DNA of 64,000 bases from NCBI GenBank assembly GCA_051530055.1, contig CM121341.1:18764784-18828783 (forward strand), read 5' to 3'. Position 1 is the stretch's first letter. Every line of letters starts with the position of its first letter. The notes under the pieces were generated by a model. The model was not told where the DNA came from. It ran no database searches and was given only the letters and a program-made list of their open reading frames with translations. The stretch comes from Neoechinorhynchus agilis (taxonomy: Eukaryota > Animalia > Acanthocephala). This document shows, piece by piece, positions 28,861 through 55,576 of this stretch. Made by a program: the position numbers and the translations under genes.

Positions 28861-30459
28861 GATGACCAGTGAAGACGATATTGACTTGTCCGAATCAGCA
28901 CTGGAACGCGTTCTATCATTTTTATCTCCGAGTGCTACATCAAAGCTATCGATTGGTGAAATAATGGAGAAAGCAGCAGCTCTTATCGAGAGTGAAAAAA
29001 ACACATATTCATACATCGATATAAAATTTTCTCTGATTTACGAACACGCCCTCATGACTCGCGATTGGCTCTGCTTGATTGAGTGTCGAATTCTTGCAAT
29101 GTATTTAATTCGCTTCTGTTTTTTACCTCACTTGAAAACTTTGGAAAACCCAATCATGTGCCGATTAGTGATTTCGATGCCATAAATGGTGAAATCTCAC
29201 ACCGTATAGTCTTAGGTGCGAGAAATCTACATTTTACGGACAACCTCCTGACATGAGCGAACTTTATTCGCTAAAGTCAATAATGGACGACAATGCAAAG
29301 TTTATTGACGTTGATTCAACAGTTGCGAAATTTTGCGATTCACTCATCATTCTTGATGAAGTTAAAATGACGACTTTTCTCAAAAGGATTTGGTGACGAG
29401 TAGTAAAGTCGCCATCATAAAAAAGAGCTCAAATCAATTTTTATAGATGGCTTAGGACAGGACGCTTATAGGAATGTTGTCAAAAATTTTAATAACTACA
29501 CTCCATGCGTTACGCTGGTGGACTGCAACCAGTCGGCGCTAAGTCACCGCGATTATCAGCGTGATCGACTGGAATATTTTAAGAAAATCGCCAGCGGTCC
29601 AAGAGCCCCTCTTTTCCATTCTTTTAAATCAGCATTGATACCGTAAGTGCCTCATCCGGCGGGAGAAAGTAGTTGCAATTTCCTTCTTTAGACTGCTGCC
29701 GCCGCTGTTTCCCATAAGTCCTCTTCAATTCATGATTCCATTAAAGACTCCAGATATTGAACCAATTTGGCATGATGGAATTTTGGATGAAATCAGATTG
29801 AAAGATGCCGAGGAAGCAAGACGACTAATTAACGAAGCAACCAATAAGTGCCTTCCAATGGAGAAATCATCTAATTTAATGAGTATGCACCTTTTCCACC
29901 AATTTTCACTAAATAATCGCAATCCCTAGAGTACCTGAACGTAATCCTTTCAAGAGAGTTAAATGCTCGTTTCCTCTGTCGTCCACCAAAACCTCTTGAA
30001 AAATTAGGATTAGACATTGATACGGCTAGGAAAGTACTCGCTAGGAATTTCAACCTGATGGCGGATATTCTTATAATTTGTATAAAAAATCGATATGACA
30101 CGAGGAAATATTTGAATTCTTTGTGCTGCGACAGTGTGACTATAAACAGCCTGGAACTTTTTCAAAGGATTTATGAGAATGCTAAAATTCCTAGACACAC
30201 AATCGACGAGTTTGTCAGTAATGCTGCAGTTCAAATAACGAAAATGTTTAAGTCAAATGATCAAATGGAAGACATTCGGAAATATACAGACGTATTTTTT
30301 TCGATTCTAACAGCTATCCTAGCAAACGAGCCCAAAAGCCTAAGTGCTGGCAGCCGAAACGATGTTGAAAGCCTAATGTTTAACAGTAAAGTTCTTAGTG
30401 GACACGAGGATATTTACGCCACTCTTCAGAAAACAATTTTAACCGGTTCAGACGATTAA
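28861..30459 (+). pseudogene. CNOT11-like (CCR4-NOT subunit 11, DUF2363) gene with frameshifts and stops: pseudogene or assembly errors
   Basis: RPPKPL...RNFNLMADILI...TINSLELFQRIYENAKIPRHTIDEFVSN..YTDVFFSIL resembles the CNOT11 C-terminus (RPPPPL; SMEVVNRL..LPPEFIHLYISN). One likely GTAAGT...AG intron near 29642-29690. The middle region changes frame. Confidence 0.5.
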
Positions 30460-33560: not shown

Positions 33561-36169
33561 AATAAATCAAATAGGTTATGACCGGGAATATTTTCACCAA
33601 AAGTATACTTTGATTAACCCGAAGGATTTTCTATCAATGAAAAGTTTTATTCTTAAAACCAATCCAGGGATTGCATCAAAAGGTTTGGTGTGATTTGCGG
33701 ATCCATTGACCAATTTAAGTCCTGAAATTCGTTTAAACTCTTTATAGACAGCATTTTATTTGATGAAAATTAAGCGCAATTAGGACATTGGATATGCGAA
33801 ACACTGTATTGATTTTGCAAAAATAAAGTACGCGTAACGCTCAACCTGATACTTCATTGCCTAATAAATCGAAGTTTGGCTCATAAAATGTTGAGATACT
33901 GAGTTCGGAATGCTGTTTTCCGCCTGCCATTCTGCGAGACGCTAATCGATATCTTTGAACCGTTGATTGGCTCGTTCTATTAAAAAAATTATGACTAATC
34001 CGGATAAACAGGCAAGCAAAAATAACGAAATGGTACCGATCAGAGCATATGCCAAATTGTAGGGATTACACAAAGATTGGAAACTGGAACAATTATTATT
34101 ACCGGACTCGATTGATTTCTGTAAACGATTTTATGCAGATGGGAGTATACTTTAAAAAAATATTTCGACAGCGATCGCTGGTTTAGTTTATGTTGTCATG
34201 GCGATTTGTACTCTGCACGTCCTTAAATTTAAGGGCAGTACACGATAGCTCTCAAACACACTTTTAGTATGAAAGTAGCTTAAATCCTATGCTTTCACGA
34301 TGAACGATTGTTAAAATTTCGTTTGACTTATTGTTAAGAAAGTTCTTAGGCGATGAACAGGGGCTAAGTTTTTTATTTAGAACGAAACCCATTTTGTTAC
34401 AGCTATATACGCTTTTCGAAAAATTTGGTTATCTTCAACTGGACCGAATTGACTGAGCGCCAGATAATTGAAATTTGTAAGCTGCAAAGAAAACCGATCT
34501 TAAACATTAGATTGTTCCAGCGATCACTAAAAACTCAAGAAGCTGAATAATTTTTGCGCTGGTATTAAATGGCTGGTATTTATTTTACACTTTAGATTCT
34601 TTGCGTCCGTTGAAGTAAAACTGCAGCTATATTGCGTGCCTTTACGCGAAGTGAATTCGGAGTGTTGCAATTTAATTAGCAACGAGACCGTGCTTCTTAT
34701 CGTAATATAAAAGTGAAGATTTATTCGAAGATCTTAAAGCTGCTCTGTAATGACTCCAATTCTCATCTCCTTCAACCAAGCTCTATACAAACTGAAACTT
34801 ATAAGACCAGTCAAGGCAAAACATGTGATCCGTCGGATTCTCGGTCTATATCGTTCCAAACCCAATATCAGAAAATACATTCTGGTGGAATATTTTGCAG
34901 GCGTTGGGCGTTATCTAAGCGATTCCGAGTATGTGTTTCCGAACTCTGAAGGGATTTTTCAAGGCAACTGCTTTTTTGTCATCGAAGAAGTTAGGTGCAG
35001 AATGCAGAACTATGGCACGAAAATCGAGTTTTTGCTTTCACAGATTCTACTTGAACTCAAGCACAATAACGAAATCGTTTCACACATCCGTCAAAGAAGA
35101 ACGGTTTCGCACGGTCGGATAAACACAGTGGCTGTTGACTCGGCTTACGGAAGCAGTAATTGAGCATGAGTTTTTGTTTCTATTTTGCCAAGAAAATGCG
35201 CTTTTAAATTTTGTGAATATTGTTCCCGTATCATGGGCGTTAATCTCTGGGATGTAAAAGGTGCCGATGTATGAGAGATTTGCAACTTAAATGTTTCTGT
35301 GACGGCAATTATAGACTTCTTGTGATTGTTTTATGGATAAGATGAGAGACACTTACACGGGTGGGGACCATGAAATCTTGAAATTAAAGTGCTTCAATAA
35401 TAACGCTTTAACTTGCAATTGATAAGCATCTATGACTTTTATGGCTTACATTAGACCACAATTCGTAGCTTATAGCCGAGTGCTGTATGTCGAATATTCG
35501 CGAAAAATTCTGATTCGTTTCCAAACCTAAAAAGAATATTCTATTGATCTCGCTCATTAGTGTTTTTCTAAATGAGTAAATTTTGTAAGAGGGATGAGAA
35601 CCGTTTTCTGCAAATTTATTGTAAAATTCACCGGTTCAATTGCATACTTTAAAATATATTGATAACTTTGTGCGTTCAACTAAAAAACTTCCGATTTCTG
35701 TGTTTGCAAAATAAAAAATGTCATCAGCATATATTAATGGGATTATGTGTCTTGATTTATTCATTTTCTTAAATATGCACATCAAGATTAACATGAATAG
35801 CGTTTGGGAGAGAGATAAACCCTGATGGACAATGTACTTAGTTTAGAAACAAGTGCTGTCAGGGTCAACTTCATAGTAAAAAGATTTTGTTTCTAAAAGA
35901 CAGTCAATTTTGATTGATTTAGGAATTTCCGATTAACTGAATCAAAAGCTTTGTTAATAAAAGGAGTGGACGCTTCTCCATGGGACAAAAACATGAAAGT
36001 AGTAAAATAATTGATTCTACGGGACTAAAACTTAAAAGGCATTCAAGGCAGCAAAATCATTTCCCATTCACGTTGCATTTATCAAACGTAGTCACAGCTC
36101 CGGCATTGACAAGCAAAAATGAACTGTCGCGAGAATATTTTAAAGGACGACTAAATCTAAGGAAATTTT

Positions 36170-36572
36170 AAATCTGGAATCAGCAGAATCAGCCTTGCTT
36201 TTAAAGCTTTTCAGCCTCACCGATCATGATAATGAATAGCAGATATCGGTTCAAGACTTGAAGCTATTCGTTTCATCACTGATTAACCAAGAAATCAATG
36301 ACGAAAAAATACTTAAAAGAACAATGCAACTGATTGGTATCGATCAACGTGGATTTATTTCCTCCAAAGCGTTTCTAGATTTTGTCCAACACGGGTCACA
36401 AAACGTAAAGACTAACGATGACACTGCATTTATAAAATTGTTCGAATATTTGGATGTGGACAACGATGGGGTGATAAGCCAAGATGACCTAGAAAGATCT
36501 CAAGCAAGCTGATTTCAACAGAGATGGATACATTGACATTGGTGAATTTAAGAGGTTATACAGATACGTGTA
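36170..36572 (+). pseudogene. Calmodulin-like EF-hand pseudogene (copy A)
   Basis: Compared with 44431-44880: ATG changed to CTG, an in-frame TAG near 36238, and a 50-nt frameshifting deletion after GAAAGATCTC. Confidence 0.85.
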
Positions 36573-37702
36573 AGATTATTTTACGCTTAATTGAACCCTA
36601 AAATCATTTTTCTGTTTGCAGTGTTGTCAACATTTCGGTGTCACATTTATTATCAACAGAGAGCAAAAATTACTATGCCGATTTTAATATCGAATTCTTC
36701 TAATTAAGACAAGATTTAACAGCAAGGTTACTTGCGAAGCGCAGTTTACACAAATCGTTTTTTAAAAAAACCATTTCACGAAATGAATTAACCTCGGTCT
36801 GCGTCAATGGAACTATCTAAACATAAACGGGACTGCAGTTGTGGTGATAATAATCCTGGATAAAACATGTTTTATTGAATCGAAAAGTGTTTAATCACCA
36901 ATTTATTTTGCTTTGATAATAAACGGGACTTGATCAAGTAAAAAGAGCGCAAAAGTTACATCTTCTAAACAAAGCTTAAAATCTATTACATCTTAACGAT
37001 AAAATAACTTGAGAATAATATCAATAAATTAAAGAATATTCAAAATCCTAACCATAAGCATTGCGATCAAAAGGATGGCAATAAATTTTGTTTGCCACAC
37101 ATAACCAACATGAAAATAAATCACGGAACGTTACCGTATTTAACGCAAAATATTGAGCGATATAGCCGCTGTTTTTGTGAATTTTGTTTTCCAAATCCTA
37201 CAAACACCGTATCCCATGAGCGTTTAGGCATTCTAATCGGCTATGCATGAATCGGTATTGGCAATACCCGTATAAATACCTAGCCGATCATTCCCTGCAC
37301 ATACCCAGTGTGATACAGTACCTAGCGATAGCGCCACCTTCCAGCACTGATCATGATTCGCAATTGGTTCCGGCGAAAAATCTCCTTCATAACTTTTGTT
37401 GCTAGAAATAGTAATTACTTTTGCTCGATCCAATGAGTAAATTTTAGTTAATGGGGGATAGATTGAAATTTTTTCGTGATAAAACGTCGTTTAAAATTTA
37501 GGGCAGTTAACACTCCTTTTTTTACTGCCACACAACATTGAGTACGTATCCCTTAATTGGTTAGGCAAGATAAGAAAATATTTGCGGATAGCTGATATTA
37601 CTTTGGCTTATATGGAACCAATAGAAGGTTTCAATTCGAGAATCTCTCATCGATAATACTTCTTTATCTTTGAATCTTAAATTAGATTGTTCTTCAAGTG
37701 TT

Positions 37703-38570
37703 ATGGAAGCACACAACACCAACGGAAATGATAATCTTAACAACGACAACATTCAAAACCAAGAGCAGTCTCCTAACAATGCCCCAACACCTATTGTTCA
37801 TCGGACAAACTTAAGTGGTCAGTATATATACTTTGAATATTCATCACATCTAATGCACTAATTATTGAAGAAAACTGTTGTGGCATTTGTAAGGATAAAT
37901 CATCTGGCCGTCATTATGGCATTAGAGCCTGTGAGGCGTGTAGGGCATTCTATAAACGCTATCTGAGAAGTAGGTACTTAAATGTTTTTTGCAAAGTAAG
38001 ATATAAGATTTAGATAACCGAGCTTATGTGTGTTACAAAGAGAATGAATGCGTTATTAATAGCGAAACAAGAAGAGATTGCAAGGGCTGCAGGTTAACGC
38101 TTTGGCGAAATGCTCGTCTGCACCTAGGAAACCGGCAAATTCCAAATGCAAACGCCAATGGAAACGCGAATAACAATCAAGATAGCATTCCGAACAATGT
38201 TATTCAAGAACGATCCGCCAATGAAGTTCGAGATTCTAACGGTTAGTCGCGTTCACAAACTTCTAGATACAATCACCCAACGGTGTTTTCATCATTAAAT
38301 TAGGCAAATTGTGTGAGATATGCAAGGATGTAGCCGCTGGACGCCACTACGGCGTAAACGCATGCGAGGCATGTAGAGCGTTTTACAAGCGCCATTTTAA
38401 AAGTATGCTTTATATCGATTTAATTTTTGTTTATTAAGTTCATTTTAGAGCCGATAACCCATGAATGTGTTTCGAATAGTACCTGCACAATCAATAAAAG
38501 TACAAGAAACGACTGCAAGTCTTGTCGATGGAAGATGTGGCAAGATGCAATTAGCAAACTGGAATTATAA
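37703..38570 (+). CDS. Nuclear-receptor-type protein with two C4 zinc-finger DNA-binding domains and no apparent LBD, 220 aa (copy A)
   Basis: Exons 37703-37817, 37871-37969, 38014-38241, 38304-38402 and 38449-38570 with GT-AG introns join in frame. DBD1 [27 protein letters not shown]...CKGCR; DBD2 [27 protein letters not shown]...CKSCR; then TAA. Confidence 0.8.
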
Positions 38571-39027
38571 TTTCACAGTTATGATGATAAAAATGTAGAT
38601 CGGCTCCAGCTCGTTTTGAACAATTATAGCTTCTAAACGGCATACACGAGCCGCTCGTTAGATGACAACAACATATATTCATTTCTTTACAAATATCACA
38701 AGTAAATGTATATTCATTGAGTGATTTATTTGGGCATTAAACGGTTACTCAGTCGACTGATGAGCTGGAATTAGACGTACAGTTCACAATTGATAATAGC
38801 TAAACTTTTTTAAGGTCACTTATAAGAACATTTCACTTGAAAGGTGTCTAACACAAGAGTTCTTTGAGAAGTCTTTTCGCGTAAAGATAAAATCGAATCA
38901 AAGCCCGGAGAAAATTCAGCAACTATCTTAAACCTGAATAAAAAATCTATTCTTGTGCTTAGATGGCCACTTTACCTCGAAAACATATTTAGTATCTTAC
39001 CTAGGTTTCCTCTTAAACTGGATAAAA

Positions 39028-39190
39028 ATTAGACTTATTGTTTAACTCTTCACCTGGTAAATAATTTTTTATTACACACGTTTCGAGCCTCGTCGGGTTC
39101 ATCATCAGTCTGTTAGTTATTAGAAGACGCGAAGTTCGAAACGTTTAAAAAAATTATTTACGGGCTTGATACCTAAGCAATAAGTCTAAT
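39028..39190. repeat. Imperfect inverted repeat containing opposed degenerate Penelope-type hammerhead motifs (also at 47377-47538)
   Basis: Paired segments attagacttattg/caataagtctaat, gtaaataatttt/aaaattatttac and acgtttcga/tcgaaacgt. The minus strand reads CTGATGA T GAACCC gacg AGG(C/T)TC GAAACGT. Confidence 0.65.
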
Positions 39191-39625
39191 CATATGCCCC
39201 GGTACCTCATATATCGACATTTAGAAGAAAATTGATCGTTACTTAATTTTTGTACTACTTGTGTGTCCTATTGACTATAAATCGTTTTGTTTAAAATTTT
39301 TCTAATGAGCGTGTCTGTACTTAACAAGTTTCGAAAGTTCATTAAGAACCTCATTGACTTTTTCATATGCTGGTATAAATTGTAGAAGGTTCAATGGTTG
39401 TCTCCAAACTGTAATACCAACCAGTATTTATTATTTTTAAAAATCACAAGCTTTTCATCTGGGCCACGAGGGTTCATCTTATAAAGCTTATAATGTTCTT
39501 ATCCGTCGGATGACTTTTGATACTTTCAAAAACCTAATTTTAATTCAAAGTGGAACAAATGCCTTTTATATAGAACTTGCTGGTGAATAACATCTTAATA
39601 TTTAAAATTCTTTGTTCTGTAAATT

Positions 39626-42191
39626 AACCCAGCAATCGGGATGACTCGGTGCTGGTCCCAAGCCCGAACAAATGGGGAGGGTTGGCGTCAGAAAGGGCAT
39701 CCGGCCGTAAAATCTTGAGCCAAAAACACATCAGCAATGTCCGATCGATAAAGCTAAAGCATTCCCTTCATGCGACGCGGAAACCCGGCGCCCGGGGTTT
39801 GTGAAAAATTATTCATGGTTACCGGATAAACGACGGGTCCGGCTAAAGAAGCGAGTCGCTTTCAAAATACGAATCGGCACCCTGAACGTAGGTTCAATGA
39901 CCGGGAGAAGCAGGTAAGTGGTCGATTTGATGAGGAGGAGAAAAATCGAAATTCTTGGCGTCCAGGATATCAGATGGAAAGGAGGGAAGGCTAGAGAATT
40001 GGGCGACGGATTTAAACAGTTCTAGTGGAGGAGCAAGCGGTAGGAACAGAGTGGGCGTCATAGTATCAAAGGATCTAGTGGACAACGTCGTAGAGGTGAC
40101 ACGAACAAGCGATCGGGTAATGGCGCTGAAATTAAGCGTTAACGGCGAAGCCACGACAGTAGTTTCCGCGTAAACCCCACAAGTCGGTTGTAGTGAAGAG
40201 GAGAAGGGGGAATTTTGACTGGATTTATCGGAAGTGACAAGGCCTAGGGAAGGTCGATGCGTGATAACCGGCGATTTCAACGGACACGTGGGGCCGAGAG
40301 ATGGATACAAGCGAATTCATGGAGGACACAGTGTAGGATCAAGGAACGCCGAGGGTGTAACACTATTGGATTACGCAGCAGCGTTGGAGTTGCTTATTTG
40401 AAATACATACTTCAAAAAAGACCCACGGAACCTTTACCCATACTCAAGCGGTGGAAGATCAAGCCAAATCGATTTCATTTTGAATCCGATAGGGAGGTGG
40501 GGTGAAGTTCAGAATGTCAAGATAATACTAGCAGAGGAATGCATGACGCAACATAGAGTGCTCGTGATGGACCTCAATATTTGGGGAAAGCCAAACAGTC
40601 GACAACGGGCATTGCGCCGAAAATCAAGTGGGGAGGTTAAACATCCTATACTCAGGGAAAAGATGAAAATGGGTCTCACCCAGAAATATAGCGAGAATGT
40701 GGCTGAACTGGAACGCTGGTGGAATGAGACAGCCGAAGTGATTCGTAGTGAAGCACAAAAAAACTAGGAATGACATCGAGGAAACCTAAACCCCAAAACA
40801 AAGAGGCGTGGTGGTGGAATCAAGTCGTCAAGGACGCAATCAGTCTAAAGAAGTCAGTCAGGAAAAGATTGGATTTTGACGCTTCGGCCTCGAATGCAGG
40901 CGCTTACAAACAGGCTAAAAGGAAGGCCGCATGAGAATGCGCCAAAGCCAAGAGGGAAGCCGATAACGACCTGTACGAGCAATTACAGCGAGGGAGTTGT
41001 AGAGATATGGTCTTCTGGTTGGCCAAAGTCAGGGATAAAAAATCGCGTATATCGTGCATCTTAAAATGATCAGTGATAGCCACGGAAAGACGCTGGACCA
41101 ATGCAAGGACATTTTACAATCGACGCAATATTCGTGCTAAGGCAGCTGTATGAGAGGTTCAGTGAGATGCAGTGCCCTTTACACAGTGTGTTCGTCGATT
41201 TGGAAGAGGCGTACGATTCGGTTCCTCGAGATCTGGTGGGGGCATTCCTCAGGAAAAGGAATTGTCCCGAACACTATGTCGCCGCGATCCAAGCGATGTA
41301 TCGAGAATGCTACAACTGCGTGCGATGCCACAGCGGAACGACCGACTATTTCCGAGTATCAATGGGTCTTCAACAAGGTTCGGCTCTGAGCCCATTCTTG
41401 TTCACGATCGTGATAGACGTCCTGGGAAATGCGGAAAGAAAAACGAACGCACCATGGACGAAACTATTCGCGGACGATTTGGTGCTCACAGTTAGGGACG
41501 TGGACACGCCCAGGAATTTGCTGAAGAGTTGGCAACAGCGATTAGAGAGCAACGTATTGAGAGTGAGCAGGCGCAAAACGAAATACATGGGACCGGGTAA
41601 CCTCGATATGGAAGGAACTCAGATCGAAAAGATGGACACCTTCAAATATTTGGGCAGCATGTTGAACATGCAATGTGAGCTCGCACCAGAGATCGGACAA
41701 AGAGCTCAACGCGGGTGGAACAACTGGAGTAAGACAGCAAGCATTCGTTGCGATAAGCGTCTCCCGAACAAGATTTAAGGGTGGGTGTGCAAGACAGTAG
41801 TGCGACCCGCCATGCCCTACCGAGCAGAGACGTGGGCTACGAAGAAAGAAGACCTTCAACGATTGGCCGTCAGCGAAATGCGGATGCTGAGATGGCTCGT
41901 AGGATTGACACGCAAGGACCGAGTGCCCCATGAGGAGGTGCGAGAACTGTTTGCTGTCGAGCCGATTGAGGAGGCAATCGCAAAGAGGCGGGTGCGATGG
42001 TACCTGCAGGTGACAAAAGCAGATGAAGACGCAGCTTGAGGGGAAAGGGAGAAGGGGGAGGCCAAACAGAGGTGGAAGGACAGTGTGAGCGGAGATTTCA
42101 AGGCGTTGGGAAAGGCGAAGAACAAAGACGGAAGCCGACAATGCTGGAAAGAACGACCTCTCAAGTGGGAGAAAAGTTCAAAGAAATTTTG
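39626..42191 (+). mobile_element. RTE-clade non-LTR retrotransposon, decayed and internally deleted, with a 14-bp TSD
   Basis: RIGTLNVGSMTG endonuclease start; FVDLEEAYDSVPR, GLQQGSALSP, LFADD in RT. TSD ttgttctgtaaatt at 39612-39625 and 42192-42205; empty site at about 49986-49999. Confidence 0.93.
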
Positions 42192-42805
42192 TTGTTCTGT
42201 AAATTCTGGTACTCTCATGCGTTTTTAAACCCTGCGAGACTCGTTCTGCTTCTTCCTTTGTAGAAGAGATCAAATATGGTCTGTAAATTCGTTTTTGAGC
42301 GTAGAGGGCGATTTTAGATCCAAACTAGCCAAAGACTTCCTTATAATGATCTGACGAATTTCCAACTGCTTCATTCATGTCCTATAATTTCGTTCATTCT
42401 TTGCAGAAAGCTTTATTCTCCATCTTTGGATTTGTTCACCTGCATTGTTAGATTTATATCGAGCAATCGCGTTGAAGAAGAGCACGGCAAGCGAAATATT
42501 GAATTATAAATTCTGTTTATCAAAGCATTCAAATCGTATTATTTTTGTACCTGCTAAAGAAAAACACGGGAAAGTATTAATTAAGTGATTTTTCGTGACT
42601 AACTGTTTTAGGAAGCGAAATTACGAGTCTGCAGAGTTTCTTTGGATACGCGCTGCTCACTGATTTTTGCCATTCGTTGACTTTATTTATTACTACAGCC
42701 GTATAAAACAATTAAAAAAATTGAGTCTAAACTCGAACGGTCGTCGTATTGCGAAAAAGCATTGGGAACACACTAAAAAAGTTGTTGAGGTTATTCTTAA
42801 GAGAT

Positions 42806-43522
42806 ATTTTGTCGCAAGAATACACCTGCTCGTGCGTCGCCGGTCGTTTCTCTCAATTTCTTCGAGAGATCCCGGAGCAGAGTGAGTGCGGAGCTGCCAA
42901 GCGCTCCATACGTCTCTACTCCTAAGGGTACTAAATAGTGGGCCCTTTCTAAATCCCTATATTTTCGTACATTCCTCCCTTACGCTGCACTGGATGCACC
43001 TTGAGCGATTTCGAGAGAGTAGGGAATGTTGCTTATTGCGAGCGTGTCCACACAAGTGGCGTCTCAGAGAAGGCATTTGCCCTCCCGCCACGGAAAGAGC
43101 GAAATTCCGTCAGGTCGACGACCGCTTAGTCGACAAAGATGGGCGGGTTCCAATGTGTCGAAGTTCGCCGTTCTCAACGCACGAGAAATTACGCTATTGA
43201 TCTCAGAATGGCGTGAGAACCTACTTCCTGGCTTACGGCAAACGAGACCCTGTTGCCCGAAAGCATCAACCGAAGACCCACATCGACAGCGATGGGGCGT
43301 GCATATCGGGAGACCAAATCTTAAGGACACTGCGATCTTCGTTACCTCATACCGACTATGCACGAGCAGGTGTATTCCTATAACAAAATATCTCGCTCGC
43401 AATACAGAGGCAATGCTGCTAGCGTGATAGCGACAGCCGAGGAAGAAGAGAAGCTAAGATTTTACGGACGGTGGTGATTGCACGTGTTGTGTTCAATTAT
43501 TGTAAAACTTATTGTATTTGTC
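42806..43522. mobile_element. CRE-like RLE non-LTR element, 3' part with an inverted 5' segment, 12-bp TSD
   Basis: Minus strand: CRCG..CRK..RHSEIN..RPDG..PWREGK..GVETYGALG. Plus strand 3' end: QNISLAIQRGNAASV. TSD ttcttaagagat at 42794-42805 and 43523-43534; empty site at 50609-50620. Confidence 0.85.
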
Positions 43523-44430
43523 TTCTTAAGAGATTGTCAGTTAATCTTCACTTTAGAGATCTAAGACTAATTGATCTTACTTTATACTGGATGTGTTTTT
43601 ATGGACGTATCGATAAAATGTCGATTGTTCACAGACGGAAATCCATTCCCAAAATACGATAATTTTATATAATAAAGGTAGATAAAAGGAATATTTTATT
43701 GATCTCGCTCATTAGTGTTTCTCTAGATGAGTAGGTTTTTTGTAGGAGAAATCAGAGTCGTTTTCTGCGAATTTATTGTCAAATTCACGGGTTCAATTGC
43801 AAACTTTAAAATATTTAGATAACTTTGTGTGTGTTCAATTAAAAACTTCCGATTTCTGTGTTTGTAAAATAAAAAATGCCATCAGCATATATTAATGGGA
43901 TTATGTGTCTTGATTTATTCATTTTCTTAAATATGCACATCATGATAAACATGAATAGCGTTTGGGAGAGAGATAAACCCTGATGGACTATGTACTTAGT
44001 TTAGAAACAAGTGCCGTCAGGGTCAACTTCATGGTAAAAAGATTTTGTTTCTAAAAGATAGTCAATTTTATAAAAAAATTACTGGTAATTTCAAATAGCT
44101 AAGAGATTGATTTAGGAATTGCCGATTAACTGAATCGAAAGCTTTGTTAATATCCAGTTGTAATTAAATTTTATTTACATGCGTGGACATTGAATTTAAA
44201 TCATTCAATTCGCATAAAAAGGAGTGGACGCTTCTCCATGGGACAAAAACATGAAAGTAGCAAAATAATTGATTCTACGGGATTAAAACTTAAAAGGCAT
44301 TCAAGGCAGCAAAATCATTTCCCATTCGCGTTCATTTATCGAACGTTGTCATAGCTACAGCGTTGACAAGAAAAAATGAACTTTTGCGAGAATATTTTAA
44401 GGGACGACTAAATCTAGGGAAATTTTGAAT

Positions 44431-44880
44431 ATGGAATCAGCAGAATCAGCCTTGCTTTTAAAGCTTTTCAGCCTTATCGATCATGATAATGATCAGCAAA
44501 TATCGGTTCAAGACTTGAAGCTATTCGTTTCATCACTGATTAACCAAGAAATCAATGACGAAGAAATACTTAAAAGAACAATGCAAATGATTGGTATCGA
44601 TCAACGTGGATTTATTTCCTCCAAAGCGTTTCTAGATTTTGTCGAACAAGGGTCACAAAACGCAAAGGCTAACGATGACACTGCATTTATAAAATTGTTC
44701 GAATATTTGGATGTGGACAGCGATGGGGTGATAAGCCAAGATGACCTAGAAAGATCTCTTCAGTTCTTATACGAAGAAGATATTGGTAAGATAGCTAAAC
44801 GTTTATTGAAGCAAGCTGATTTCAACAGAGATGGATACATTGACATTGGTGAATTTAAGAGGTTATACAGATACGTGTAA
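44431..44880 (+). CDS. Intronless calmodulin-like four-EF-hand protein, 149 aa (copy B, intact)
   Basis: Loops DHDNDQQISVQD, GIDQRGFISSKA (degenerate), DVDSDGVISQDD and DFNRDGYIDIGE. The ATG at 44431 is used rather than the TTG in the ORF track. Confidence 0.85.
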   Translation: MESAESALLLKLFSLIDHDNDQQISVQDLKLFVSSLINQEINDEEILKRTMQMIGIDQRGFISSKAFLDFVEQGSQNAKANDDTAFIKLFEYLDVDSDGVISQDDLERSLQFLYEEDIGKIAKRLLKQADFNRDGYIDIGEFKRLYRYV

Positions 44881-46050
44881 GATTATTTTACGCTTAATTG
44901 AACCCTAAAATCATTTTTCTGTTTGCAGTGTTGTCAACATTTCGGTGTCACATTTATTATCAACAGAGAGCAAAAATTTCTATGCCGATTTTAATATCGA
45001 ATTCTTCTAATTAAGACAAGATTTAACAGCAAGGTTACTTGCGAAGCGCAGTTTACACAAATCGTTTTTTAAAAAAACCATTTCACGAAATGAATTAACC
45101 TCGGTCTTTGTATAACCTGGATGCGTCAATGGAACTATCTAAACATAAACGGGACTGCAGTTGTGGTGATAATAATCCTGGATAAAACATGTTTTATTGA
45201 ATCGAAAAGTGTTTAATCATCACCACGACTTCAACTCTATTATCCCAATTTATTTTGCTTTGATAATAAACGGGACTTGATCAAGTAAAAAGAGCGCAAA
45301 AGTTACATCTTCTAAACAAAGCTTAAAATCTATTACATCTTAACGATAAAATAACTTGAGAATAATATCAATAAATTAAAGAATATTCAAAAACCTAACC
45401 ATAAGCATTGCGATCAAAAGGATGGCAATAAATTTTGTTCGCCACACATAACCAACATGAAAATAAATCACGGAACGTTACCGTATTTAACGCAAAATAT
45501 TGAGCGATATAGCCGCTGTTTTTGTGAATTTTGTTTTCCAAATCCTACAAACACCGTATCCCATGAGCGTTTAGGCATTCTAATCGGCTATGCATGAATC
45601 GGTATTGGCAATACCCGTATAAATACCTAGCCGATCATTCCCTGCACATACCCAGTGTGATACAGTACCTAGCGATAGCGCCACCTTCCAGCACTGATCA
45701 TGATTCGCAATTGGTTCCGGCGAAAAATCTCCTTCATAACTTTTGTTGCTAGAAATAGTAATTACTTTTGCTCGATCCAATGAGTAAATTTTAGTTAATG
45801 GGGGATAGATTGAAATTTTTTCGTGATAAAACGTCGTTTTAAATTTTAGGGCAGTTAACACTCCTTTTTTTACTGTCACACAACATTGAGTACGTATCCC
45901 TTAATTGGTTAGGCAAGATAAGAAAATATTTGCGGATAGCTGATATTACTTTGGCTTATATGGAACCAATAGAAGGTTTCAATTCGAGAATCTCTCATCG
46001 ATAATACTTCTTTATCTTTGAATCTTAAATTAGATTGTTCTTCAAGTGTT

Positions 46051-46918
46051 ATGGAAGCACACAACACCAACGGAAATGATAATCTTAACAACGACAACAT
46101 TCAAAACCAAGAGCAGTCTCCTAACAATGCCCCAACACCTATTGTTCATCGGACAAACTTAAGTGGTCAGTATATATACTTTGAATATTCATCACATCTA
46201 ATGCACTAATTATTGAAGAAAACTGTTGTGGCATTTGTAAGGATAAATCATCTGGCCGTCATTATGGCATTAGAGCCTGTGAGGCGTGTAGGGCATTCTA
46301 TAAACGCTATCTGAGAAGTAGGTACTTAAATGTTTTTTGCAAAGTAAGATATAAGATTTAGATAACCGAGCTTATGTGTGTTACAAAGAGAATGAATGCG
46401 TTATTAATAGCGAAACAAGAAGAGATTGCAAGGGCTGCAGGTTAACGCTTTGGCGAAATGCTCGTCTGCACCTAGGAAACCGGCAAATTCCAAATGCAAA
46501 CGCCAATGGAAACGCGAATAACAATCAAGATAGCATTCCGAACAATGTTATTCAAGAACGATCCGCCAATGAAGTTCGAGATTCTAACGGTTAGTCGCGT
46601 TCACAAACTTCTAGATACAATCACCCAACGGTGTTTTCATCATTAAATTAGGCAAATTGTGTGAGATATGCAAGGATGTAGCCGCTGGACGCCATTACGG
46701 CGTAAACGCATGCGAAGCATGTAGAGCGTTTTACAAGCGCCATCTTAAAAGTATGCTTTATATCGATTTAATTTTTGTATATTAAGTTCATTTTAGAGCC
46801 GATAACCCATGAATGTGCTTCGAATAGTACCTGCACAATCAATAAAAGTACAAGAAACGACTGCAAGTCTTGTCGATGGAAGATGTGGCAAGATGCAATT
46901 AGCAAACTGGAATTATAA
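46051..46918 (+). CDS. Two-DBD nuclear-receptor-type protein without apparent LBD (copy B)
   Basis: Near-identical to copy A at offset +8348; splice sites, cysteines and stop codon are preserved, with only a few substitutions (e.g. HFK/HLK, ECVS/ECAS). Confidence 0.8.
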
Positions 46919-47636
46919 TTTCACAGTTATGATGATAAAAATGTAGATCGGCTCCAGCTCGTTTTGAACAATTATAGCTTCTAAACGGCATACACGAGCC
47001 GCTCGTTAGATGGCAACAACATATATTCATTTCTTTACAAATATCACAAGTGAATGTATATTCATTGAGTGATTTTATTTGGGCATTAAACGGTTACTCA
47101 GTCGACTGATGAGCTGGAATTAGACGTACAGTTCACAATTGATAATAGCTAAACTTTTTTAAGGTCACTTATAAGAACATTTCACTTGAAAGGTGTCTAA
47201 CACAAGAGTTCTTTGAGAAGTCTTTTCGCGTAAAGATAAAATCGAATCAAAGCCCGGAGAAAATTCAGCAACTATCTTAAAACTGAATAAACAATCTATT
47301 CTTGTGCTTAGATGGCCACTTTACCTCGAAAACATATTTAGTATCTTACCTGGGTTTCCTCTTAAACTAGATAAAAATTAGACTTATTGTTTAACTCTTC
47401 ACCTGGTAAATAATTTTTTATTACACACGTTTCGAACCTCGTCGGGTTCATCATCAGTCTGTTAGTATTTGAAGACGCGAAGTTCGAAACGTTTAAAAAA
47501 ATTATTTACGGGCTTGATACCTAAGCAATAAGTCTAATCATATGCCCCGATACCTCATATGTCGACATTTAGATAAAAATTGATCGTTACTTAATTTTCG
47601 TACTACTTTTGTGTCTTATTTTTTACAATCATAGGT

Positions 47637-49649
47637 TTTATTTTGAAGATATAAACATAATTATTCGCCGTTTTCGTCCTCAATTGTCGCCCGAATGCTT
47701 GTAGTGTTGCCTCTCAACGCGGCGATGCTGATATTGTGAACCAAGTTTTAACCTGACATTACATCACCAGTTGTAACCTTAAGGCGTCGCTTCCAATTCC
47801 ATTAGGAGTTGAAGAGCCTCGCTACCAAGAGATCCGTAGGTCTCAACCCCAAAAGGCACAAACACATTGGCCCGGGCTAAATCGAATTATTTCGCCGTTT
47901 TCCGTCCTTCCGCAACGCTCGCTGCAGCTCCAGCTTGAACCACCGAGAACTTGAGATTGCTGACCGCGAGATTATCGACACAAGTGGCGTCCTAGAGGTG
48001 GCATTTACCCTCCCGCCACGGAAATGCGGTCACCCCATCAGCTCTAGGAGCGTCGTCCCTACAAAGGTTGGCAAGTTCCAAAATATTGGGGGCATGTGTC
48101 GTAACAAGTGCCCGGCTCAGCACCATGTTAATTTCGGCATGTTTTGCGAATCTGTTGGTTTATTTTCTACAGGTGAGACTGACGTCCCGTCGAATCCACA
48201 TTTGCACCGCAGCGGCAACGGTGGGGATGACACATCGGTAGCCCTAGTCTCATTGAAACTCCGACCCGTATTGCCTCGTCGGAGAGGAGAGTACTCACAG
48301 ATACCTGCGGGACCGCGTTCAATCAAGCACTTGATTCTCTAGATGAGACTGCCAACAACCTGGCACGGACAACGTCGTCGCTTGAGTCTGATAAGAGAGC
48401 TTTGAACTCTTGCGACGAGCGGTCGATCCCACACAGATTGTTTTTGGCCATTCACAGGTACTTGATCGGAGTTGGTCAGTGTACACCACTAACTGATTCC
48501 CTCCTCAAAATACCTATCAAGACGATACGTATCTTTCGAAATGTGCTGAACTGCGCTTCGGCTTCCCTCATGGGAGCGGGATATGTCTGCTGCTTTCCGG
48601 ATGCCCAACCTGCCAGAAGATACAGGCAAGAATGCTTGTCGCCATGCCTCTTCTGACAGCTGCACATTTAAAACTTGCTCGAGACAGTCCTTCGATCTGT
48701 CATCTAGCTTGCCAAGCGGAACCTTGTGCTTGAAAAACGGCGCAGTGCGTAGAGCATAAAGGAACTTGGGGTTCACGAGGGTATAAAAAGAGCCCATCCA
48801 AGCTCACAGACCCTATCGCAAAGCACCGATAATGTTTTAGAAGGCTGTTAGTTTCGTGTTCTATATTCCCATCGAAAACACAACTACCCAAAAGCTTAAG
48901 CCGGTCTAGATCGATCATTTCTATCCCGAGTGCAACATTTTCAAAGTCGCGCTTGATTACGTCTTTTGCAGGGTACCTCTCTATGTTACGGAATAGAATT
49001 TCGCACTTTTCTGTGTTCAATTCAATGCCCAGCTTGCTTGCCCCCATCTTGATTTTCTCCAGATCACGAAGAACTACCTGGGGATCGCCTCCCAGCGTAG
49101 CATCGCCTAGGTACCAGGCATTGAATTCCGCATCAAGAGAATGCGCTAATTTGTTCACTGTGAGCGCGAAACCAATTGGACATAATGCGGAAGGAATGAT
49201 GTGATCGTTGAATACAAGGGGGGGTCGCAGCGCCGTACTAATTTATAAAATACACGTAAGCCTCCATTGCGTGATCTCCGACAGCTTTTAAGAGCGAATC
49301 GCGATTAACGGAGTTGAAGATGTTCCGGAAATCTAATTTTAGGATCACACACGGTTTGACGTTCTCAATAACAAATGTACGGAGTGCGTGGACTATGGCT
49401 TCCGTCCCACAAAGTGTGCAGCAACCAAGTTGAACTGGACGAAGAATTTCAGCAACACCTTCTGATACTCGCCTAGAAATCACTTTCCCTGCTAGTCGTC
49501 CCAATATAGAGCCAATCGCGATGGGACGAATCCCACCGTCCTTCTATTTTAAAGCGCAGAGGGAAGCGCAAAAAACAATTCGATCGCTTTGGGGGATAGG
49601 TTGTCCCAAGAGAAAAAGCCGTCTAACCAAGTCAAGGCGTTCAGGAGAA
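47637..49649 (-). mobile_element. 5'-truncated CRE-like non-LTR retrotransposon (RT plus RLE endonuclease), decayed
   Basis: IRPIAIG..GRLAGKV..PVQLG..GTEAIVHALR..KLDFRNIFNSV; AWYLGDATL; PWREGK; ISIAALRGN. Probable 7-bp TSD cataggt at 47630-47636 and 49650-49656; absent in copy A near 39275. Confidence 0.85.
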
Positions 49650-50869
49650 CATAGGTCGTTTTGTTTAAAAAAATTCCGATGAACGTGTCTTCATTTAAGA
49701 AGTTTTGAAAGTTCATTAAGAACCTTACTGACCTTTTCATATGTTGGTACAAATTGTAGTAGCTTCAACGGTTCTCTCCAAACTGTAATACCAACCAGTA
49801 TTTATTATTTCTAAAAATCACAAGCTTTTCATCTGGGCCACGAGGGGCCATCTTATAAAGCTTATAATGTTCTTATCCGTCGGATGACTTTTGATACTTT
49901 CAAAAATGTAATTTTAATTCAAAGTGGAGCAAATGCCCTTTATATAGAACATGCTGCGGAATAACGTCTTTATATTTAAAATTCTTTGTTCTGTTAATTC
50001 TGGTACTCGGATGCATTTTTAAACCTTGCGAGACTCGTTCTGCTTCTTCATTTGCCGAAGAGACCAAATATGGTCTGTAAATTCGTCTTTGAGCGTAGAA
50101 GGCGATTTTAGATCTAAACTAGCCAAAGACTTCTTTATAATGATCTGAAGAATTTCCAACTACTTCATTCATGTCCTATAATTTCGTTCATTCTTTGCAG
50201 AAAGCTTTATTCAACATCTTTGTATTTGTTCATCTGCATTGTTAGATTTATATGGAGCAATCGCGCTGAAGAAGAGCACGGCAAGCGAAATATTGAATTA
50301 TAAATTCTGTTTATCAAAGCATTCAAATCGTATTATTGTTGTACCTGCTAAAGAAAAACACGGGAAAGTATTAGTTGAGTGACTTTTCGTGACTTTATTA
50401 ACGCCAACCGGTTTACACTGTTTTAGGACGCGAATATACGAGTCTGCAGAGTTTCTTTAGATACGCGTTGCTCACTAATTTTTATCATTCGTTGACTTTA
50501 TTTATTACTACAGCCGTATAAAACAATTTAAAAAATTGAGTCTAAACTAGAACGGTCGTCGTCTTGCGAAAAAGCATAGGGAACCCGCTAAGAAAGTGGT
50601 CGAGGTTATTCTTAAGAGATTGTCATTTAATCCTCACTTTAGAGATCTACGACTAATTGATCTAAATTTATAAAGGATGTTTTTTTATGGACGTATTGAT
50701 AAAATGCCGATTTTATGGGACCCGAACTTGAATGGCATTAAAGGCGGCAAAATCATTTCCCATTCACGTTGCATTTATCGAACGTTGTCACAGCTACGGC
50801 GTTGACAAGCAAAAATGAATTTTTGCGAGAAGATTTTAAACGATGACTAAATCTAAGTAAATTTTAAAT

Positions 50870-51180
50870 ATTAAATCAGCAGAATCAGCCTTGCTATTAA
50901 AGCTTTTCAGCCTCATCGATCATGATAATGATCAGCAGATATCGGTTCAAGACTTGAAGCTATTCGTTTCATCACTGATTAACCAAGAAATCAATGACGA
51001 AGAAATGCTTAAAAGAACAATGCAACTGATTGGTATCGATCAACATGGACTTATTTCCTTCAAAGCGTTTCTAGATTTTGTCGAACAAGGATCACAAAAC
51101 GTAAAGACTAACGATGACGCTGCATTTATAAAATTGTTCGAATATTTGGATGTGGACACCAAACGTTTATTGAAGCAAGT
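50870..51180 (+). pseudogene. Calmodulin-like EF-hand pseudogene (copy C)
   Basis: Start codon lost (aatattaaatcagc versus aatatggaatcagc); internal deletion after GATGTGGAC; truncated before EF-hand 4. Confidence 0.8.
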
Positions 51181-51409
51181 ACTATCATTTGTTGTTTTGT
51201 CAGCTGATTTTCTCGACCGCAAGTATATTTCTTTTTAATTTTTGTATGAATTATTTTAGCACTTTCGGCGGTAGAATTGTATGTTTTACATTAGAGAAGT
51301 GATATGATCACATAAAGTTTGATAAACAATTTTTATGTTTTACATCAGAGAAGTAATATGATCACGTAAACTTTGATGAACAATTATAAGTTTACAATTT
51401 CGGTGAGAA

Positions 51410-53650: not shown

Positions 53651-55045
53651 TTGCAGAATTGGACGAAAAGGAGGAATTTGTGAACGAAAATAGTCGCGAA
53701 TTGTAAGCGATTCCAACATTTTTTCAAAAATTTCACGAAATAAACTTACGTCGTTCCTTGTATTACCTGGATGCGTCAATGGATATAACTGCGAAATTTT
53801 ATTATATGATTAAAGTAGAAGATGAAAAAGCAAGAAAACAACCACGACGACTGTCATCCTACAAAAATAAAATAACGATCTCAACAATTACTGTTAATTT
53901 ATGATTATTTGAGTATGCTTGATCTATAGAAGTCATCTGTCGGATCCCTGACAAGAACACCCCATTATTTACAATAAAGTTAAATGATTTAGCATTCAAC
54001 CTGAGCGACTACTTCTTTGTCTAAAAACAATGTAAATCCCCAATTTCGTGAAGGCAATTGAGCAAAATCTATCCGTTTTAATCTAAACAACACTAGCAGA
54101 CAATTAAGCGATGCTCATATTTCAGAATTCAATTGCATTTAAGAAATTTTGTATGCAGCGTTTAGCAAATATCGACAATAAGTTCCTGGAAGTTCTTGTG
54201 TATAAGCGTAAATATTGAATTTAATCGATTTTCTTAAAAATATTCATTTCGAAAAGACCAAAATGATGCATTGTGAATAATTACAATGAGATTTATTAAC
54301 TATCTCAATTTTCGATAATTGAGTAAATGATGATCGAGTCTCAGTTCTGCCAAATATTGCAATAAACAAAATATGCAGAAATGTCTAAGTAAACTGGAAT
54401 AAATCGTTTTGGTCGATAATAAAGTATTAGAAACTATTGTCAAATTTATTATCAACAAGTGTTATAAGAAACGTCTTACCCTTGTATTGGATGAATTGAC
54501 AATAGTTTTGCTCAAATTTTCGATCAGAAGCAGACAAACGACTCGCATCTGAAATTTGCAATGGTTAATTAACATTAAAACTCGTACAAGCAGCGAACAT
54601 CTAAATTGACAACAAATACAACTTTTGTAAGTCAAACCCATTTAAAATTTGAGAGACCGTATTTTGAGGAAATTTGCACCATTAAAAACATTTAATAAAT
54701 CAATTAAAAGAATTAACTTCTCCGTTATCTAAACAGCTCGTCGTATTTTTAAAATAGCTAGGAAGTTTTTATTCGCTGAACTAAAAGTACAATAACAAAA
54801 TGTTTTATTAAGTGCTTTACGGTGTAATGGTGGTCACTACATCACTTAATAAAAAGTAACCGGCTTGCCAGACATAAGGTGAAAATAAAATGCATTATAT
54901 TACATTGTATGTATTAATGGTTTCCAGCAATCGTGACACGACATGCAACGCATAATGTGTCGCATCGAGAAGTCATGAGTAATCACACCGTACGTTTTGA
55001 TTAAGAAAGGATATTTTCACTGGTGGATTGTCTCGGGTTATCGAA

Positions 55046-55576
55046 ATGATAATGAAATCCACATTTGGCGGCGGTTGTTTCTGGTGTTTAGAAGCATTCT
55101 TTAAGCGCATTCGTGGAGTTCACAGTGTGGTTCCAGGATACGCTGGTGGAAGCAAACCAAATCCTACTTATCAAGAGGTATGTACGGGATCCACAGGACA
55201 CGCCGAAGTCATTCAAATCACTTTTGATCCCCAAGTTCTGCCTTTTGATAAACTCCTCCATGTCTTCTTTAACACTCATAATCCAACAACGCTTAATCGA
55301 CAAGGTAATGATATAGGAACGCAGTATCGATCAATCATTCTCTATCATGATGAACAACAAAGACAAGCTGCAGTGGGAGCACGTACCAGCGCACAAATGG
55401 ACGTTGGAAGTAATCCAATCGTAACAGAGATAACACCACTCACTGCATTTTATCCGGCAGAGAAATATCATTTTAACTATTTTGAGAACAATCCATGCAA
55501 TCAATACTGCTCACTGGTTATCGCTGAGAAACTAAGGAAACTATGCCACCAGTTTAGAGACATAATGGAATTCTAA
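55046..55576 (+). CDS. msrA: Peptide methionine sulfoxide reductase A, intronless, bacterial-like sequence type
   Basis: FGGGCFWCLE, GYAGG, NPTYQEVCTGSTGHAEV, HNPTTLNRQGNDIGTQYRS, FYPAEKYHFNY. Start at ATG 55046 or 55052. Confidence 0.95.
   Translation: MIMKSTFGGGCFWCLEAFFKRIRGVHSVVPGYAGGSKPNPTYQEVCTGSTGHAEVIQITFDPQVLPFDKLLHVFFNTHNPTTLNRQGNDIGTQYRSIILYHDEQQRQAAVGARTSAQMDVGSNPIVTEITPLTAFYPAEKYHFNYFENNPCNQYCSLVIAEKLRKLCHQFRDIMEF

Follow-up and report, generated by a model that had tools for sequence, protein, structure and literature searches.

Nuclear receptors that carry a pair of DNA-binding domains (DBDs) in one chain are known as the 2DBD-NR family, in which NR7 / 2DBD-NRA and 2DBD-NRB have been distinguished (Wu and LoVerde 2007 and 2023; PMC1810520, PMC10497141). 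The canonical members carry a ligand-binding domain (LBD), have 17-22 residues between the two DBDs, and display P-box pairs such as CEACKK-CEGCKG (PMC10497141). The 2DBD-NRC1 and 2DBD-NRC2 proteins of Aphelenchus avenae are listed in the same work (PMC10497141). Receptors without a DBD or without an LBD have been placed in NR0, which is a structural bin and not a grouping by descent (PMC4070562). Two-DBD receptors have been treated as a single ancient subfamily, defined by the possession of two DBDs plus an LBD.

Here, a receptor-like gene of the acanthocephalan Neoechinorhynchus agilis is compared with these systems. We consider it probable that the gene belongs to a lineage-restricted tandem pair whose 231-aa product, with two DBDs and no LBD, was built from an internally duplicated ER/ERR-like module and is not a canonical 2DBD receptor (NR7).

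Gene model and tandem duplication

The gene occupies positions 37612-38570 on the + strand of the window, that is, the whole 64,000-nt stretch of contig CM121341.1 of GCA_051530055.1, which was read directly and whose numbering is used throughout (Table 1). Its product had been described as invisible in the list of open reading frames, but it is already deposited in GenBank as KAL7678280.1 (P0001), a predicted model titled "hypothetical protein ACOME3_004510"; the deposited annotation of N. agilis was produced by BRAKER with RNA-seq hints (PMC12690905). The initial annotation had read five exons from the ATG at 37703, which total 663 nt and give 220 aa plus the stop. Those exons and their TAA are identical in the DNA reading and in the BRAKER model, and the C-terminus of the deposited protein, SKLEL, is the end obtained by reading exon 6. 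The length needs revision, as the model comprises six exons over 959 nt and encodes 231 aa, the additional 16-nt 5′ exon contributing 11 residues. The N-terminus of KAL7678280.1 maps onto the window as ATGGAACCAATAGAAG/gt ... ag/ATTGTTC (slashes mark the splice junctions), with 37627 spliced to 37686. The deposited start is therefore 91 nt upstream of the ATG at 37703, whose Met becomes residue 12. All introns between 37703 and 38570 are GT-AG and in phase 1, and AATAAA motifs are found near 38940 and, for the second copy, near 47290. On structural grounds we take the gene to be real: it is well formed, deposited, and undescribed.

Two separate single-DBD genes were considered in place of one and rejected, given that DBD2 lacks a separate in-frame ATG and that the frame stops after ...SNG if intron 38242-38303 is left unspliced. 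Since retention of that intron ends the frame, a single-DBD isoform produced in this way is possible.

Table 1. Positions of the exons, of the second gene copy, and of the two duplication units in the window.
Feature	Positions	Strand	Remarks
Exon 1	37612..37627	+	16 nt, MEPIE plus 1 nt; only in the deposited model
Exon 2	37686..37817	+	Asn/Gln-rich N-terminal region
Exon 3	37871..37969	+	99 nt; first zinc finger of DBD1, P-box CEACRA and FYKR; Pfam zf-C4
Exon 4	38014..38241	+	228 nt; second zinc finger of DBD1 (CRLTLW) and Asn-rich linker; Pfam zf-C4
Exon 5	38304..38402	+	99 nt; first zinc finger of DBD2, P-box CEACRA and FYKR; Pfam zf-C4
Exon 6	38449..38570	+	second zinc finger of DBD2 (CRWKMW), 9 more residues, TAA at 38568-38570
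Second gene copy	45960..46918	+	KAL7678282.1 (P0151); same six exons, offset +8348
Duplication unit 1	35528..43700	+	EF-hand gene, receptor-like gene, spacer; retrotransposon inserted at ~39626-42183; self-BLAST
Duplication unit 2	43683..50620	+	different insertion at ~47620-49650; self-BLAST

The gene is present twice, as had been noted at the outset, and the second copy includes the 5′ exon. Self-BLAST and the repeat families indicate that a segment of about 8.3 kb has been duplicated in tandem; each unit consists of an EF-hand gene, a receptor-like gene, and a spacer. Over their core (36502-39272 versus 44809-47620), the units agree at about 99% of aligned bases; in the flanks, identity drops to 90-95%. 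This difference suggests either gene conversion of the core or a younger overlay. An uncollapsed haplotype was also considered as the source of the second copy. The limited identity of the flanks (90-95%) and the different retroelement insertions make it unlikely and favour a real duplication. A six-frame motif scan of the 64,000 nt revealed neither a third receptor-type finger nor a third copy of the gene.

Other features of the region are as follows. A reverse transcriptase frame (RVT_1) is found at 41101-41775 (+) within the unit 1 insertion, and the unit 2 insertion has long frames on the - strand that do not match Pfam. The EF-hand gene occurs three times in tandem (36013-36800, 44270-45107, and 50709-51238); an open frame of 151 aa, intact and with EF-hand Pfam matches, is present in the middle copy at 44425-44880, and the first copy has no frame longer than 84 aa, its region showing 15-nt and 25-nt indels relative to the second. 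At 55028-55576 there is an uninterrupted 182-aa frame that strongly matches peptide methionine sulfoxide reductase (PMSR, E 7e-62) and is intronless, unlike the short-intron genes around it. For the open frame at 30058-30456, Pfam gives a CNOT11 match that is weak (E 3e-5) and falls slightly short of the cut-off; a gene for a CCR4-NOT subunit probably has one of its exons here.

Features and origin of the two DBDs

Pfam zf-C4 (PF00105) matches KAL7678280.1 in two stretches with 130 bits, against a cut-off of 21.1, and so recovers both DBDs. Taken alone, the four exons that encode them are matched at profile positions 2-30 (exon 3, E 1e-10), 35-61 (exon 4, E 3e-4), 1-31 (exon 5, E 3e-11), and 36-61 (exon 6, E 5e-6). 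By motif scan, each DBD has the arrangement C-X2-C-X13-C-X2-C followed by C-X5-C-X9-C-X2-C, which completes the eight zinc-binding cysteines. Besides the P-box CEACRA and the adjoining FYKR, both share the first-loop sequence GRHYG, and the ninth Cys is replaced by a Trp, within CRLTLW and CRWKMW, respectively. The shared P-box and the replacement of Cys by Trp had been pointed out in the initial annotation, and the exon translations and the motif scan agree with it. The ninth Cys of receptor DBDs is non-liganding.

These residues are rare. Among the 289 other proteins compared, CEACRA was found in none of 417 other first fingers, 14 of which have an Arg at the P-box position of the near-invariant Lys, and a Trp at the ninth-Cys position was found in none of 270 other second fingers. 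A text search of the literature for CEACRA as a P-box returned unrelated words only. When a profile of the first fingers was run against 1.84 billion representative proteins, a single outstanding match was obtained, KAL7678280.1, at 143.6 bits; all others scored at most 97.5 bits, or about 50 bits per finger. Large protein-database searches, this one included, yielded no orthologue in another species. The gene appears to be lineage-restricted, being known here from one species.

AlphaFold, run on the deposited protein with an 18-row alignment, gives pLDDT values of 83-93 at residues 50-118 and 160-229, and Foldseek aligns the model with the solved DBDs of RXR, GR, TR4, and ERR (target-normalised TM 0.75-0.9, rmsd 1-3 Å). 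Residues 1-5, 9-47, and 120-157 have pLDDT below 50, so that the N-terminus and the linker are predicted to be disordered. The Asn/Gln-rich leader and Asn-rich linker first described for the protein are borne out by its composition: Asn plus Gln make up 29% of residues 1-52 and 33% of the approximately 48 residues of the linker (114-161).

The two DBDs are identical at 34 of 64 positions (53%), and the best identity of either to about 100 other DBDs examined is 25-28 of 61. In a maximum-likelihood tree of 100 DBDs and 73 columns, DBD1 and DBD2 form one clade with support 100/99, although both are long branches and the grouping could be partly attraction. The exons for the two first fingers have the same length, and phase-1 introns are found at equivalent positions, as the initial annotation had stated from the DNA. 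Together, the tree, the identity, and the matching introns support its proposal of an internal duplication that doubled a two-exon DBD module. We suggest that the pair arose by an old tandem duplication of this module within one ER/ERR-like receptor gene.

Was that parent a canonical 2DBD receptor? In the tree, canonical first DBDs make up a clade of their own (100/98), with that of the canonical N. agilis receptor P0170 beside rotifer NR7A proteins; neither DBD of the present gene falls within it or among the canonical second DBDs. An AU test rejects the placement of DBD1 with canonical first DBDs (delta lnL 30.9, p 0.004). The introns differ as well. In both DBDs of the gene described here, the intron is in phase 1 and lies in the fourth codon after KR, eight codons beyond that of P0170, in which the P-box Lys of each DBD is immediately followed by a phase-0 intron (CEACK/K and CEGCK/G). 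An intron at the P-box is also present in Brachionus P0201 (DBD1), Brachionus P0283 (CEACR/T), and the NR1-like amphioxus P0024, with phase 0 read from sequence in P0170 only; the survey gave no data from P0062, a single open frame on a metagenome scaffold, or from P0153, an intron-free and apparently transcript-derived contig. Because of the tree, the AU test, and the different position and phase of the introns, an origin independent of the described 2DBD receptors, as first envisaged, is supported.

It follows that descent from a canonical receptor of the rotifer NR7A kind, truncated by loss of its LBD and altered by later divergence, is hardly credible. It is true that P0170 is encoded on the same chromosome-scale record and that rotifer NR7A3 and NR7A5 have an Ala in the second P-box (CEACKG; PMC10497141), but in addition to the tree and to introns unlike those of P0170 and Brachionus P0201, the spacer of 48 aa exceeds the 17-22 of canonical members and the P-boxes differ. 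P0170 itself is a protein of 650 aa with CEACKK and CEGCKG and an LBD (CM121341.1, 12599905-12606878 on the full record); given its introns after the P-box Lys in both DBDs, the canonical DBD pair appears likewise to stem from the duplication of a two-exon module.

As for the proposed ER/ERR-like parent, the solved sequences nearest to the first finger are ERRs, and the P-box CEACRA differs from the CEACKA of ERR by a conservative Lys-to-Arg change. An ERR-type gene of Intoshia linei has its inter-finger intron at the same position and in the same phase (phase 1, fourth codon after KR), a match that rests on one comparator, the other genes examined being NR1-like and NR7. In the tree, the sister of DBD1 and DBD2 is a marine metagenome receptor with the P-box CEGCKA (99/86, on a long stem), and ERR-like sequences form a neighbouring group that is weakly joined to them. 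The intron match, the nearest solved DBDs, a P-box one residue away, and the CEGCKA sister point to an ER/ERR-like receptor as the probable parent, a link that the tree leaves weak.

Between DBD1 and DBD2, synonymous sites are saturated (pS 0.90 and 0.81) and pN is lower (0.19 and 0.41), which argues that the internal duplication is old and that the domains have been kept by selection. The odd residues that the two DBDs share would have been maintained since that duplication.

This history bears on whether the gene is of any use at present, as an intact reading frame could also belong to a silent or useless gene, one of a young tandem pair drifting to decay. Several observations would fit such a fate: the lack of an orthologue in the large protein searches, the retroelements around the gene, and the four coding substitutions that separate the two copies, half of which are replacements (F to L and V to A) and half synonymous. 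All four are in the DBD2 exons (5 and 6), with none in exons 1-4, and they are uninformative on current selection. We nevertheless regard decay as unlikely. Each copy retains, across its two DBDs, the full set of 16 zinc ligands as well as the base-contacting residues, and the two domains, saturated at synonymous sites, are still 53% identical as proteins. In each copy, all ten splice sites are intact. Furthermore, BRAKER would be unlikely to call a first exon of 16 nt without an RNA-seq intron hint, and its presence in the model suggests that such a hint existed.

The C-terminal end and proposed mode of action

In exon 6, the reading frame closes nine residues past the final Trp of DBD2. When the protein is aligned with canonical 2DBD receptors, the KC..GM motif and the whole C-terminal extension are missing from it. 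Pfam finds zf-C4 only in KAL7678280.1, and no Hormone_recep; the same search matched Hormone_recep in P0170, which served as a positive control. The lack of an LBD, claimed from the start, is thus borne out on the protein, and a scan of the DNA beyond 38570, which the initial annotation had advised, gave the same result.

Could an LBD have been missed, with downstream or alternative last exons joined in some transcripts to yield a receptor of normal length? An LBD that has diverged and is split over short exons easily escapes detection, and about 1 kb of 3′ flank is conserved between the copies. Against this, the 20 downstream open frames, on both sides of the retroelement, contain no Hormone_recep match by Pfam, and when 133 receptor tails from the LBD side were compared by tblastn with the DNA downstream of each copy, only noise came back, the best hit (E 0.02) being on the opposite strand. 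From the last Cys codon of exon 6 to the TAA there is no GT at which such a transcript could leave the exon, except one weak site inside the helix, and the BRAKER model stops at the same TAA. Finally, the downstream DNA of the two copies is interrupted by different retroelements. We therefore hold an overlooked LBD to be very unlikely and return to a protein that ends shortly after DBD2.

How might such a protein act? In ER-type DBD-DNA structures, four residues contact bases: the Glu and Lys of the P-box and the Lys and Arg of FFKR. Both DBDs of the N. agilis protein have Glu, Arg, Lys, and Arg at the corresponding positions. Given these residues, we infer that the recognition helix of each DBD would enter the major groove of an AGGTCA-like half-site. 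A single chain on two half-sites would then amount to a covalently linked dimer, in which the flexible linker of about 48 residues would tolerate a loose spacing between the sites. With neither an LBD nor an AF-2, the protein would not respond to ligand. Its action would be constitutive, whether it competed for the sites that full-length receptors use or worked through the Asn/Gln-rich regions. It is tempting to go further and see in the gene a second, independent invention of the two-DBD layout, made in an acanthocephalan lineage from an ER/ERR-type module: an LBD-less single-chain "dimer" with a bipartite site of its own that serves as a ligand-independent competitor or regulator at hormone-response elements; we offer this as a tentative reading to which we give somewhat less than even chances.

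The gene provides a compact natural test case for how two linked receptor DBDs choose the spacing and orientation of their sites, and for the effect of an Arg at the conserved P-box Lys on the choice of half-site. It is equally a case in which to follow the rewiring of receptor signalling in a parasite with a reduced gene set.

Comparison with described receptors

With the canonical 2DBD receptors (NR7), the N. agilis protein shares two complete zf-C4 DBDs in tandem in each chain and an Ala at the second variable position of the first DBD's P-box (CEAC..). It differs from them in having no LBD, no P-box pair of the CEACKK-CEGCKG type, and no RxGRQ C-terminal extension, and its inter-finger introns lie downstream of the P-box intron found in the canonical genes of N. 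agilis and Brachionus. Of the features by which membership in NR7 was judged, then, the tandem DBDs are present, and the LBD, the P-box pair, the grouping of the DBDs, and their gene structure are not those of NR7.

The likeness to ERR (NR3B) lies in the first finger, which is most similar to solved ERR DBDs, and in the inter-finger intron shared with I. linei. The N. agilis gene differs from ERR in lacking both an LBD and the C-terminal extension for an extended half-site, in having FYKR instead of FFKR, and in the Trp that takes the place of the ninth Cys. Members of NR0A (knirps, knrl, and eagle) and other DBD-only receptors resemble it in having a DBD without an LBD, hence in ligand-independent regulation, but they have a single DBD and it has two; the comparison set contained no knirps-type sequence. 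The absence of an LBD is the one feature by which the gene fits the NR0 bin.

The statement in the initial annotation that the described 2DBD receptors carry an LBD does not hold for all of them. In the A. avenae proteins 2DBD-NRC1 (KAH7714729, 327 aa) and 2DBD-NRC2 (KAH7714119, 321 aa), Pfam finds zf-C4 only. Like the N. agilis protein, these are short and have two DBDs that are mutual sisters in the tree, a sign that they underwent a separate internal duplication. They are nematode proteins and differ in their P-boxes (CTGCKT, CAGCRI, CLGCKA, and CFGCKT) and in keeping the ninth Cys, the GM motif, and an RDRRGP extension, and they are unrelated to the N. agilis gene in the tree. LBD-less models with two or three DBDs are also found in a stick-insect RefSeq entry and in two further assemblies. 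An LBD-less architecture with several DBDs is, accordingly, not unique to the N. agilis gene.

Databases also hold models with three to five receptor DBDs (P0002, P0034, P0078, P0005, and P0010). XP_063216918.1 of Bacillus rossius has three DBDs and no LBD, and CAL2035663.1 of Caenorhabditis brenneri has multiple DBDs with an LBD; some of these multi-DBD models may be fused tandem genes.

With the LBD-less two-DBD layout already known, what sets the N. agilis gene apart is the CEACRA P-box and the Trp at the ninth-Cys position, each absent from the other fingers compared. Like the nematode 2DBD-NRC proteins, the N. agilis gene indicates that the tandem-DBD layout, so far treated as the mark of one subfamily, can arise again by internal duplication and persist without an LBD.
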